Source of the DNA: Rebecca billardiae RCC1528
Lineage: Eukaryota; Protista; Haptophyta
Assembly: GCA_965240325.2 (NCBI GenBank)
Contig: OZ251235.1
Span: 186,001 to 250,000 of the forward strand
Direction of reading: 5' to 3'
DNA: 64,000 nucleotides
Shown: positions 5,892 through 9,045 of the stretch, piece after piece
Layout of the letters: the number at the start of each line of letters is the position of its first letter
Position numbering within the stretch: position 1 is the first letter of the stretch
Translations under genes and position numbers: made by a program
Notes under the pieces: generated by a model
What the model was told of the DNA's origin: nothing
Database searches by the model: none
Seen by the model: the letters and a program-made list of their open reading frames with translations, nothing else

Positions 5892-8800
5892 ATGGTGACT
5901 GCAGATGAGCTTTCGGCCTTACAGATAGCCGCCACGACGTCGGGCGTGCTCTCTGCCATCTGCAGCGTGATCGTCATCCGCTCGATCGGCCTCGCCATCT
6001 TCCGGCGGCGCGCTGACGCGCGCTCTCGCGCGCGCGTCTCGACGCAATGGCTGCAGTCGCGCGCGCCGCCCGTGCGGCATGCCGCCGTGGCCGAGAGGCT
6101 CGTGCTCGCGCTCTCGGTGTGCGACGTGATCGCCTCCGTCTCCTTCGCCATCGGCGAGGCCGGCACGCACGACCCGGCGCTGTGCATCGCGCAGGCGTGG
6201 GGCATCCACCTGGGCAGCCTCGGCAGCGTCGGGTACGCGAGCGCGCTCTCGGTGGACATCTGGCTGTCCGCGGCGCTCGAGCGGCCGCAGCTCAGCGCGC
6301 AGCTCGAGCCGACGTACCACCTCCTCGTGTGGCTCGTCGCGCTCCCCCTCGCCGGCGCGGCCCACCCGTACTTTGGCGGCGCGCTGCTCTGGTGCTGGGT
6401 GACCGACTCGGCCGCGCAGGCGTGGACGTTCTACGGCGTGGTGATCGGCGGGTACGCGCTGAACGGCGTGCTGATGGGCGGCGCGGTGCGCGGCCTGCGC
6501 GCGCTGTACGCCGGCGGCGCGACGCACGTGTTGCAGCCGCGGCGCGTCGCCTTTGGCCGCCAGTCCAAGCAAATCCTCGCCTTCATGTTCGTGTGGGCGT
6601 TCGGGATCGCGAACCGGCTGCTGATCTGGGGCGGGCACGTGTCGTTCCACGCGGCGCTGCTGCACGTGCTCTTCGTGCCGCTCTGGGGCTTCCTCAACGC
6701 GCTGATCTACGTGCACGACTACTTCAACCGCGCGCGGCTCGGCGACCTGGCGGCCGCGCAGGCGCGCGCGGACCGGCAGCAGCGCGTGCGGCGCGCGATC
6801 GAGTCGGTACTGACCGTCAAGTTCCCGGTCTCGTTCATGCCGTTCCCGGCGTTCGCCAGCGTGGGCTCGCTCATCTCGCACGAGGAGGCGCGCGACCGGC
6901 ACATGCTCCGCCCCATCCTCGACAGCCACGAGCAGTGCGTGCAGTTTGTGCGCACGCACGCCACCGTCTTCTTCAGCCACCGTGAGCTGCGCGCGCGCGC
7001 ACGGCACACGCGACCGAGCGCGCCGCGCACCGCGGCGCGAGGACGCGGCGCGCGCGCCTCGCCGTCCGTGCCACGTGCCGCGGCACCGCGCATCACGCGC
7101 GCGCCGCCCTCCGCGCCGCCTCCGCACCCCGCCCACCCACGCGCACGCGTGTGTCGCAGAGTGGACCGGATTTGGGGACCCCGACCCGACGCGCGCGCAG
7201 TACGAGCTGATGGTGCGCTCGGCGCTCGAGCTGTGCGCGGCGGAGAACATCCGGCCGCGGGACCTGTTCGTGTGGACGGACTTCCACTCGGTGCCGCAGG
7301 CCAACCCGTACCTGCAGGCGCTCAGCGTGGGCACCCTCGGCGTGTACGCCTCGCTGTGCGAGTACTTTGTCGTGGTCGCGCCGCCTGTCGAGCACGCGCA
7401 GCTGGGCGTGCGCTGCGACCTCGAGAGCTACAAAGGGTGCGTGCGCGTGCGCGCGCGGAGGGCGTCGCGCGGAGGAGGGCGCGCGCGCGCGCCGCGCGGG
7501 CCGCGCCGATGCCTCGTGCGCCCATGCGCCGCGCGCGCGCGCCCCTGCCGCGCGCGCGAGCGCAGGCGCGGATGGTGCCGGCTCGAGCAGTGGGCGCACC
7601 TCACCGCCGCGGGCACGGCGCGCATGTTCATCGTCACGGGGGACGGCGGCGAGGGCGCCCCGCTGCTGCGCCCCGTCGCGCGGCCGAGCGGTGCCCTGGC
7701 GGCCGCCGACGGCGACGGCGCGGAGGGCGGCGGCGCGGAGGGCGGCGGCGCAGAGGGCGCGCGCGAGAGCCGCGCCGAGGGCCGCGCGAGCCGTGCCGGC
7801 GGCGCCGAGCCGGCGGCGCGCACCTCCTCCGCGCTGCTCAATGACTGGCTCGCCGCGTCGATCCGCGTGTTCGACGGCGCGTTCACCGTGCCCGACGACA
7901 AGCCCAAGCTGGTCGACGTCGTGCTCGGCCTGTGGGCGCTCACGCTCGTCGCGCGCGAGGCGGGCCACGTGCACGCGACCGAGCTCATGGGCGTGGTGCA
8001 CTCGCACGCGCTCGCTGTCTTCCCGCCCGAGTACTTCCTCGACCTGGTCGAGCTGCTCGAGGAGGAGGTGCGGCAGCAGTACGCGTGGCACGCGCGGCGG
8101 CACGCGCAGCCGGAAGCGAGCGCGGGCACTCCGCAGGACGAGGGCGGCGCGGCGGCCGCCGAGCGCGACGCGGCGGCGCCGCGGCAGCAGCCGCCGCCCG
8201 CGGCCGGCGCGCAGGGGGCCACGCCCGCCGAGGCGGCGGGCGAGCCCACGGGCGACGCGCCCGCGCTGGCCGATGCGCCCGTCGCGGAGGCCGAGACGGC
8301 CAGTGCAGCCGCCCCCCTCAGCGTGGGCGCGCGCGTCGCCGAGCTCGCGGAGGACGTGGAGGACGAGCTGCTCAAGCTGCGCGCAGGGCTCGGGCTCGTG
8401 CGCACGCCCTCCGAGTCGCCCGGTGCGCCGCCGCACGCGCCGCTTGGCCCGGCCGATGACGACGACGGCGTCGGCGGCTTCAAGCCTCGGCCCAAAGCGT
8501 ACGGCATCGCCCCGGCCGAGCTGGGAGCCGGCGGTGGCACTGACGGCGCTGAGGCCGGCGGGGCCATGCAGAACGCGGCGGCCGCAGCGGCGCAGGCCAA
8601 CAGCGGCGGCGGCGCGGCGGGCGGCGCAGGCGTGCTGGGCGGTTTGCTCTCCGGCAGCCCGCCGCCGCCCCATCGCTCCGCCCTCGAGACGCGCAGCGTG
8701 AGCCGACTCAACGAGGTCGTCGTGCTAGCCAGCGCCACCGGGCCTCGCGGCGCGCGCCCGCAGCTCGCGCCGATCGGACCGCCGACGCCGATGGAGGCGC

Positions 8801-9045
8801 TGTCGCAGCTGTGGCAGGGCTGCGCCGACCGCGTCGCAAGCGATCGCGCGCGGCAGGCCGCCGCCCTCGCGAGCTCGCCGGGGAGGCGCTGGCCCTCGCC
8901 GCAACGCAGGCTCGTCGCGCTCAGCCCGCGCACCAAGACGCGCGGCCGGCAGCTCTTCGCGCGCAGCAAGACGGCGCCAGTCGCGTCTGTGCTCGAGGGC
9001 GCGCGCGAGGCCGCGACAAGCCTCGGCCCAGACAGCGTCCCCTGA
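5892..9045 (+). CDS. cAMP-receptor/GCR1-like 7TM GPCR fused to a HET/TIR-like domain; introns 6982-7159 and 7437-7565
   Basis: Seven hydrophobic segments with cAR/GCR1 motifs (RLVLALSVCD, LCIAQAW, YHLLVW, LWCWV, PLWGFLNALIY). Splicing at GT..CAG sites yields FFSHQWTGFGDPDP...VWTDFHSVPQ...YKGRGWCRLEQW, followed by a low-complexity tail. Confidence 0.8.

Follow-up and report, generated by a model that had tools for sequence, protein, structure and literature searches.

The window analyzed here, a stretch of 64,000 nucleotides from the haptophyte alga Rebecca billardiae RCC1528 (assembly GCA_965240325.2, contig OZ251235.1, positions 186,001 to 250,000 of the forward strand), carries between its positions 5892 and 9045 a gene whose single polypeptide joins an outside-facing seven-transmembrane (7TM) sensor to a cytoplasmic domain of the HET fold, the same output that stands behind many unrelated sensors in other proteins. 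An earlier note, made from the letters of this stretch, had proposed that exon 1 encodes a complete 7TM module of the cAR/GCR1 type, that two canonical introns join this module in frame to a region running from SHQW to RGWCRLE, and that the fusion is hidden in the unspliced track of open reading frames (ORFs). Our analysis bears out all three proposals: the 7TM module scores above the Pfam Dicty_CAR cut-off and is supported by Atlas and by hydropathy, including a seventh segment picked by eye; the spliced frame is collinear with an uninterrupted homolog, P0001; and intron 2, being open, is read through in the raw ORFs. A receptor-controlled, TIR-like enzyme of the HET fold is the best overall explanation of the gene, and we hold it with modest confidence.

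Gene model and seven-helix receptor part

On the + strand, positions 5892-9045 form a three-exon gene in which removal of two GT..AG introns leaves one frame of 2847 nt, comprising 948 codons and the TGA at 9043-9045 (Table 1). The start codon, ATG at 5892-5894, lies in the context GCCATGG, and the 230 nt preceding it are lower in GC and show no codon periodicity. After splicing, the junction peptides read FFSH/QWTGFGDPDP and DLESYKG/RGWCRLEQW, with VWTDFHSVPQ lying within exon 2. Exon 1 carries, right behind the 7TM, the first strand with the SH of SHQW, a motif that becomes complete only through splicing. Because intron 2 is a multiple of three in length and is open, the raw ORF list shows instead a 699-aa ORF running through it.

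Composition and homology bear on both introns. In the exons, GC at the third codon position (GC3) is 0.95-0.97 and at the second (GC2) 0.34-0.51, whereas both introns are flat at 0.80-0.91 over all three positions. The spliced protein is collinear with P0001, a 637-aa protein that carries the 7TM and the domain in one uninterrupted ORF, with 48% identity over 635 aa and no gap at either junction. P0001, found by a homolog search with the exon 2/3 reading frame, occurs on two contigs of one JGI sample, whose size and two isoform-like copies suggest a transcriptome assembly. Among the aligned family members, 93/93 have 10 residues in the Y..E segment that spans junction 2, with no insertion at the intron 2 site in any of them, and 92/93 share one length of the F..D segment over junction 1. 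Furthermore, a family profile of 93 sequences, from which the window rows were excluded, gives one match on the spliced product (301 bits, residues 295-621) and, with intron 2 retained, two matches split exactly at the intron. We reject intron 2 as coding sequence on the family spacing, the codon-position GC and the split profile match. We likewise reject an upstream exon encoding an ectodomain, on the 5′ flank without codon periodicity together with the short N-terminus of P0001.

It is very improbable that the gene model is wrong, that is, that the two parts belong to separate genes or alternative transcripts, or that intron 2 is retained, the fusion being an artifact of long ORFs in DNA of 75% GC. 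Long ORFs do occur in all frames of GC-rich DNA, and intron 2 is open and in frame; yet the SHQW motif is complete only when spliced, P0001 has the same architecture in one ORF, no family member has an insertion at intron 2, a single profile match is obtained only from the spliced product, and the introns lack codon periodicity. Three short contigs from a public run fall at the locus. One of them, of 217 nt and identical to 7261-7477, is unspliced over the border of exon 2 and intron 2 and includes 41 nt of intron 2, as the wrong-model explanation would have it. This contig probably stems from the genome of this organism or of one nearly identical to it, and it has no bearing on splicing, because genomic DNA would look alike. 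Together, the sequence evidence makes it very likely that the fused gene of 7TM and HET-like domain is real.

P0001 stops directly after the domain, and the tail of the window protein has no counterpart there. Given that codon periodicity persists through it, the tail is probably translated. It may be disordered; alternatively, the gene model may err at its 3′ end.

The receptor part is assigned by several lines of evidence. Exon 1 matches Pfam Dicty_CAR (PF05462) with 26.6 bits against a cut-off of 21 (E 4e-6; residues 74-275 on profile positions 52-256), a cut-off that is also passed by P0001 and by a more distant relative, L003. In an Atlas feature search, the nearest clusters are of the Dicty_CAR/7tm_2/GPR157/GCR1 type (0.95-0.96). 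Hydropathy gives six clear transmembrane (TM) segments, and a seventh, weaker one (around residues 100-125), picked by eye, lies inside the stretch matched by Dicty_CAR. The predicted topology places the N-terminus outside and the C-terminus inside. Cys98 and Cys168 are shared with P0001 in the alignment, and would be compatible with a disulfide between TM3 and the second extracellular loop.

Word-indexed homolog searches with the 7TM part returned nothing for the window ORF, and only itself for P0001; since both missed every other 7TM relative, these blanks carry little weight. A pattern scan of metagenome contigs found distant 7TM relatives, L003 and L004, at 25-26% identity. Both are single ORFs (L003:25-3468, 1148 aa; L004:63-2555, 831 aa) in which an Exo_endo_phos2 phosphatase follows a 7TM of the Dicty_CAR type. 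By this architecture they are GPCR-INPP bigrams, fusions of a G-protein-coupled receptor (GPCR) with an enzyme, a type described from oomycetes (PMC6033456) and here found outside them, and they are the closest 7TM relatives found for the window gene. Since these relatives are GPCR-INPP fusions, the window 7TM comes from a receptor lineage with known fusions to enzymes.

Family, conserved residues and fold of the cytoplasmic domain

The cytoplasmic domain is not special to GPCRs; it is a common cytoplasmic output of a large, mostly single-pass receptor family. A profile search of 1.84 billion representatives reaches 3,839 clusters at E<=1e-3, of which 518 remain at E<=1e-30. We surveyed the architectures of 157 proteins, namely 156 retrieved proteins and the spliced window product. 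One or two hydrophobic segments precede the domain in 88 of these and five or more in 3, and a further 54, which are fragments or consist of the domain only, have it at their listed N-end. The N-terminal partners are ANF_receptor, Peripla_BP_6, SBP_bac_1, Phosphonate-bd, OpuAC, Cache, FG-GAP, LRR_8, Ephrin_rec_like and EGF, occasionally Response_reg or a protein kinase. The Atlas clusters add ankyrin, LRR_6 and HNOB partners, and Haptophyta is the commonest phylum among those labeled. Between the last TM segment and the domain lies a median of 19 aa (interquartile range 16-21.5, n=87), against 21 aa in the window protein. Because this spacing is so tightly distributed, the domain can be described as an output module held close to the membrane by a short helical tether.

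Within this family, a cAR-type 7TM is carried only by the window gene and P0001 among the members found, so that the combination is rare. In the tree of the domain, these two are sisters (support 1.0), and next to them stands P0002 (support 0.995), a fusion with an N-terminal response-regulator receiver. P0027 and P0092 are also polytopic, with unclassified regions of 7-8 TM segments. Domains can also follow the HET-like one: P0027 has an EF-hand and P0119 a protein kinase after it. Motif scans of limited sensitivity found no relatives in viral contigs or in bacterial and archaeal genomes.

At the level of sequence, the domain is defined by three blocks, SHQW, WxDxxS[IV]PQ and RGWCRLE, which are invariant or nearly so in the family and are all present in the window protein. 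While most of the 93 sequences are otherwise ~30-40% identical to the domain of P0001, the following positions are invariant: Glu (in SHEE), Ser-His-x-Trp, Asp (in PDP), Asp (in WxD), Gln (in PQ), Phe, Arg-x-Trp-x-x-x-Glu and Pro. These amount to 10-12 positions, mostly polar, and a further 15 are more than 90% conserved. The window protein retains every invariant polar residue, namely E331, S362, H363, W365, D372, D404, Q410, R457, W459 and E463, the first of these lying in the SHEE of a family-specific N-terminal extension. In the third block, Arg457, Trp459 and Glu463 are invariant and Cys460 nearly so; Glu463 lies four residues past the invariant Trp, and the nearly invariant Cys directly follows that Trp. 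Such an invariant polar set is active-site-like.

The consensus blocks of HET domains, SYxWG, WIDxxCINQ and RxWxxQE, resemble SHxW, WxDxxSIPQ and RGWCRLE here, and plant TIRs have a WCxxE motif similar to that of the third block. The HET domain has been described by three conserved blocks (PMC4986451), and HET resembles TIR, including a functionally important Glu (PMC4986451, PMC9153377). The Cys beside the catalytic Glu of TIRs matters for the synthesis of 2′,3′-cyclic nucleotide monophosphates (PMC9153377).

When the 93 family members are scanned singly against Pfam, HET (PF06985) is the sole recurrent family, all others being found in at most one member each. HET is matched by 22/93 at E<=0.1 and by 4/93 at E<=5e-4, with a best E of 8e-6, and P0009 reaches 23.5 bits against the HET gathering score of 22.5. 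The window protein itself was scanned as separate exon pieces, for which Dicty_CAR is the only Pfam match, and the relatives P0001 and P0002 together with local profiles served as proxies for the spliced product. The earlier note had taken SHxW / WxD..PQ / RxWCxxE as the signature of HET and TIR-related domains. This assignment of the domain is supported, with the blocks kept, HET recurrent in Pfam and TIRs among the nearest solved structures; none of the TIR hidden Markov models (HMMs) is matched.

The fold was examined in models of the relatives P0001 and P0002, which are ~45-55% identical to the window protein in the domain. The AlphaFold2 model of P0001's domain has a predicted local distance difference test score (pLDDT) of 82.5, and a trimmed core of P0002, modeled with the 93-sequence alignment, has a pLDDT of 96.5 and a predicted template-modeling score (pTM) of 0.91. 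In the core model, strand A (the end of which carries SHQW) is followed by helix A, strand B (WxDxxSIPQ), helices, strand C (YFVVVAP), helix C (RGWCRLE) and strand D, so that the position of Glu463 falls, in this relative's model, in the first helix following strand C. The whole-domain model matches protist clusters in the AlphaFold DB (E 1e-29 to 1e-9), several of which are automatically named heterokaryon incompatibility domain proteins. Against the folds of the PDB, the model of the whole 318-aa domain was uninformative and the trimmed core model was used instead. This core matches Ascomycota clusters of which 94-100% of members are PF06985, with a template-modeling score by query of 0.65 over 137-142 of 162 residues, both sides of the comparison being predicted; a cluster of HET-NACHT NLRs is among the matches. 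HET-E-1 and HET-6 are among its top Swiss-Prot fold matches (probability 0.63-0.66). The HET fold of the domain is thus well supported in these models.

Among 48,161 solved chains, the TIR of SARM1 is the best match of the core model (104/140 residues, rmsd 3.6, 18% identity), at a Z of 7.0, where values under 8 are rated middling by the structure-comparison tool's own note. The next solved neighbors are nucleoside 2-deoxyribosyltransferases (Z 6.7-6.9) and fucosyltransferases (Z 6.4-6.7); the TIRs of MyD88, IL-1RAcP, MAL, TIRAP, ThsB, TIR-1 and SpbK follow at Z 5.5-6.3, and many others lie at Z 5-6.3. By hand count, TIR chains make up 27 and deoxyribosyltransferases 11 of the top 50 Foldseek matches in the PDB, whose probabilities go up to 0.98. 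The comparison of the region after TM7 with HET and TIR folds, which the earlier note had called for, comes out in favor of fungal HET for the core model of P0002, with a TIR on top among solved chains at that modest Z. From these models, the domain likely belongs to the wider TIR/NDT-type assemblage of Rossmann-like folds. Taking sequence and fold together, we consider it highly probable that the domain is of the HET fold and of the TIR superfamily.

The same neighbors could be read differently. The domain might belong to this Rossmann-like assemblage and carry out another chemistry, as a nucleoside or nucleotide N-glycosidase, a deoxyribosyltransferase-like enzyme or a sugar-nucleotide transferase, with no role for NAD+ or cell death. 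Indeed, the 2-deoxyribosyltransferases (Foldseek probability up to 0.98) and the GT-B fucosyltransferases score like the TIRs, and proteins of the SLOG/DprA type are also among the structural matches. However, the fucosyltransferase matches span only part of much larger proteins, the sole link at the level of sequence is to HET, and the best matches in shape outside the family are fungal HET domains, which leaves this chemistry quite unlikely.

The fusion could also be real and its HET-like domain be a non-catalytic adaptor, recruiting HET-like proteins homotypically as the TIRs of MyD88/MAL do, with the partners doing the signaling. An adaptor role for HET was first proposed by Dyrka et al. 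(PMC4986451), some TIRs are not NADases (PMC9153377), and the TIRs of MyD88, MAL, TIRAP and IL-1R score nearly like that of SARM1. The many short family proteins with the domain near their N-end, some of which are fragments, would be potential partners. We nevertheless regard a pure adaptor as improbable, if somewhat less so than the other chemistry, since 10-12 invariant, mostly polar residues over 93 diverse sequences are the pattern of an active site and not of an interface, and since the Glu lies at the position where HET and catalytic TIRs retain theirs.

Proposed mechanism and features of the locus

Returning to the receptor-controlled enzyme, the protein would be a 948-aa receptor with a short outside N-terminus, a cAR/GCR1-type bundle, a rigid helix ~21 residues past helix 7 and a domain of ~330 aa. 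Binding of a ligand to the 7TM would alter how the membrane-proximal domains pack or associate with one another. This would switch on a TIR-like site centered on Glu463 and formed with Ser362/His363/Trp365, Asp372, Asp404, Gln410 and Arg457, which would then cleave NAD+ or another nucleotide. A second messenger might result or, if the activity is high, the loss of NAD+ and the death of the cell, and G proteins could be bypassed, as for other GPCR-bigrams (PMC6033456).

Several points weigh against this reading. Both splice junctions are placed by homology and composition and not by transcripts, and the 217-nt contig is unspliced at one of them. The Pfam thresholds of HET and TIR are reached neither by the separate exon pieces of the window nor by P0001's domain; TIR models match none of the 93 members (Pfam at E<=0.1; PADLOC), and profile searches of the PDB sequences gave nothing, TIR included. 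The structure models are those of relatives. Compared with solved TIRs, they reach only modest values (Z <= 7.0, Foldseek E >= 8e-3, template-modeling score ~0.4), a middling range in which deoxyribosyltransferases and fucosyltransferases equal the TIRs. The candidate equivalence of Glu463 with the catalytic Glu of TIRs comes from motif spacing and the order of secondary structure. Finally, a 2025 review still lists HET domains as undetermined in both activity and structure (PMC12881547).

Given these points, it stays tentative, from the conserved residues and the models of relatives, that the domain acts as an enzyme on NAD+ or nucleotides and that the receptor controls it. The widest form of the proposal is doubtful by comparison, namely that this GPCR signals in a ligand-gated manner without G proteins through its own TIR-superfamily enzyme, by an NAD+-derived messenger or by NAD+ collapse, and belongs, as one of its rare branches, to a very large system of "Toll-like chemoreceptors" in marine algae. 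If it were true, ectodomains for amino acids, phosphonate, betaine and other small molecules, as well as Cache, LRR and 7TM sensors, would feed one HET/TIR-like output, and the system might serve infochemical sensing, antiviral defense or programmed cell death in blooms.

The features of the gene are collected in Table 1. No second copy of the HET-like domain occurs within the 64-kb window. Upstream, a 735-aa ORF at 3440-5647 (+) ends 245 nt before the receptor ATG. Its start resembles a signal peptide, and sulfotransferase-like motifs (VRNPWSRAVSVYNY) can be made out by eye, with no Pfam match at E<=0.01; we treat it as a gene separate from the receptor. Downstream, a 501-aa ORF at 9976-11481 (+) matches CAP59_mtransfer (cryptococcal mannosyltransferase 1) with E 1.6e-52 and looks like an ordinary neighboring gene.

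Table 1. Features of the receptor gene, in positions of the window
Feature	Position	Strand	Remarks
Exon 1: start codon, 7TM, membrane-proximal helix, first HET-like strand (...TVFFSH)	5892..6981	+	Phase-1 end; GC3 0.95-0.97
cAR/GCR1/GPR157-type 7TM module, residues 1-293, with short, predicted extracellular N-terminus	5892..6770	+	Pfam Dicty_CAR, Atlas, hydropathy
Tether helix RVRRAIESV ~21 residues after TM7, N-terminal extension, strand A ending Ser362-His363	6771..6981	+	
Intron 1, 178 nt, GTGAGC...TCGCAG	6982..7159	+	GT..AG; GC 0.83; without codon periodicity
Exon 2: QW..DPDP, helix A, strand B with WTDFHSVPQ, strand C YFVVVAPP, His442	7160..7436	+	
Codons in exon 2 of Trp402, Asp404 and Gln410	7273-7275, 7279-7281, 7297-7299	+	
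Intron 2, 129 nt, GTGCGT...GCGCAG	7437..7565	+	GT..AG; GC 0.88; in frame, open
Exon 3: remaining domain, low-complexity tail, TGA 9043-9045	7566..9045	+	
RGWCRLE, start of helix C; Glu463 (codon 7585-7587), candidate catalytic residue	7567..7587	+	Conservation
Gly/Ala/Glu-rich loop within the domain, of variable length across the family	7651..7836	+	Low confidence in relative's model
Conserved C-terminal part: NDWL..SIRVFDGAFTVPDDKPKLVDVVLGLWAL, helical subdomain ending VFPPEYF..LVELLEEE	7837..8079	+	
Tail, ~320 aa, rich in Ala, Gly and Pro	8080..9042	+	Without homolog; GC3 0.87-0.94

Comparison with known systems

The gene shares with GPCR-bigrams the combination, in one polypeptide, of an N-terminal cAR-type 7TM and a cytoplasmic, presumably catalytic accessory domain. 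It differs from them in that the accessory domain here is HET/TIR-like, outside the published types, and in that the host is a haptophyte alga and not an oomycete. The published types are PIPK, INPP, AC, PDE, TKL and AP, with no HET or TIR among them (PMC6033456), as the earlier note had it, and our literature searches did not find a GPCR-HET or GPCR-TIR fusion. We rate the gene as a GPCR-bigram with a new class of accessory domain, set in a receptor family that has been glimpsed but is uncharacterized.

Compared with fungal HET proteins (the HET-E/-D/-R NLRs, TOL and HET-6; PF06985), the three blocks, the recurrent Pfam HET matches and the fold are shared. However, the domain here lies C-terminally, behind a receptor that tethers it to the membrane, whereas in fungi it is N-terminal on a cytosolic NLR or stands alone. 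A family-specific extension at its N-terminus and a helical subdomain at its C-terminus are further differences, and the separate exon pieces of the window stay below the Pfam threshold. Non-fungal HET homologs, one of them from Emiliania huxleyi, were pointed out in 2014 with no account of their architectures (PMC4986451). In the family described here, HET-like domains outside fungi are mainly cytoplasmic outputs of the membrane receptors of marine protists, in thousands of clusters, and the defined sensor and defined tether make this a tractable setting for HET biochemistry.

The catalytic TIRs (SARM1, RPS4/RUN1, ThsB, TIR-STING and SPARTA) include the nearest solved structures, and the invariant Glu of the present family, four residues past an invariant Trp at the start of the helix after strand C, is a candidate counterpart of their catalytic Glu. 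They differ in that no TIR HMM matches any member of the present family and that the structural scores are modest. Toll-like receptors are similar at the level of the family, which combines a ligand-binding ectodomain (LRR_8 in one member), a single TM segment, a short tether and a domain of the TIR superfamily. In contrast to Toll-like receptors, the ectodomains of this family are mostly of small-molecule-binding types (ANF_receptor, Peripla_BP_6, SBP_bac_1, Cache and Phosphonate-bd), and the window protein has a 7TM in place of an ectodomain and one TM segment.

A further parallel comes from Gephyrocapsa (Emiliania) huxleyi, in which virus-responsive, receptor-like "TIR" genes expressed in early infection were reported in 2025 (PMC12489294). 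In these proteins, the intracellular TIR, whose Glu is conserved, comes after either a leucine-binding/EGF-like part on the outside or several TM helices at the N-terminus (PMC12489294), which is the layout of the family members with Peripla_BP_6, EGF, TM segment and domain. Compared by description only, they very probably form the same or an overlapping family, although no GPCR module or relationship to HET was identified there (PMC12489294). Because these proteins had been reported, the general idea of a receptor-like TIR is not wholly new (PMC12489294). If the virus-responsive genes do belong to the same family, its receptors may matter for the termination of blooms and for virus resistance in algae. 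Furthermore, the new bigram class would tie seven-helix receptors directly to the TIR/HET enzymes of cell death and immunity.

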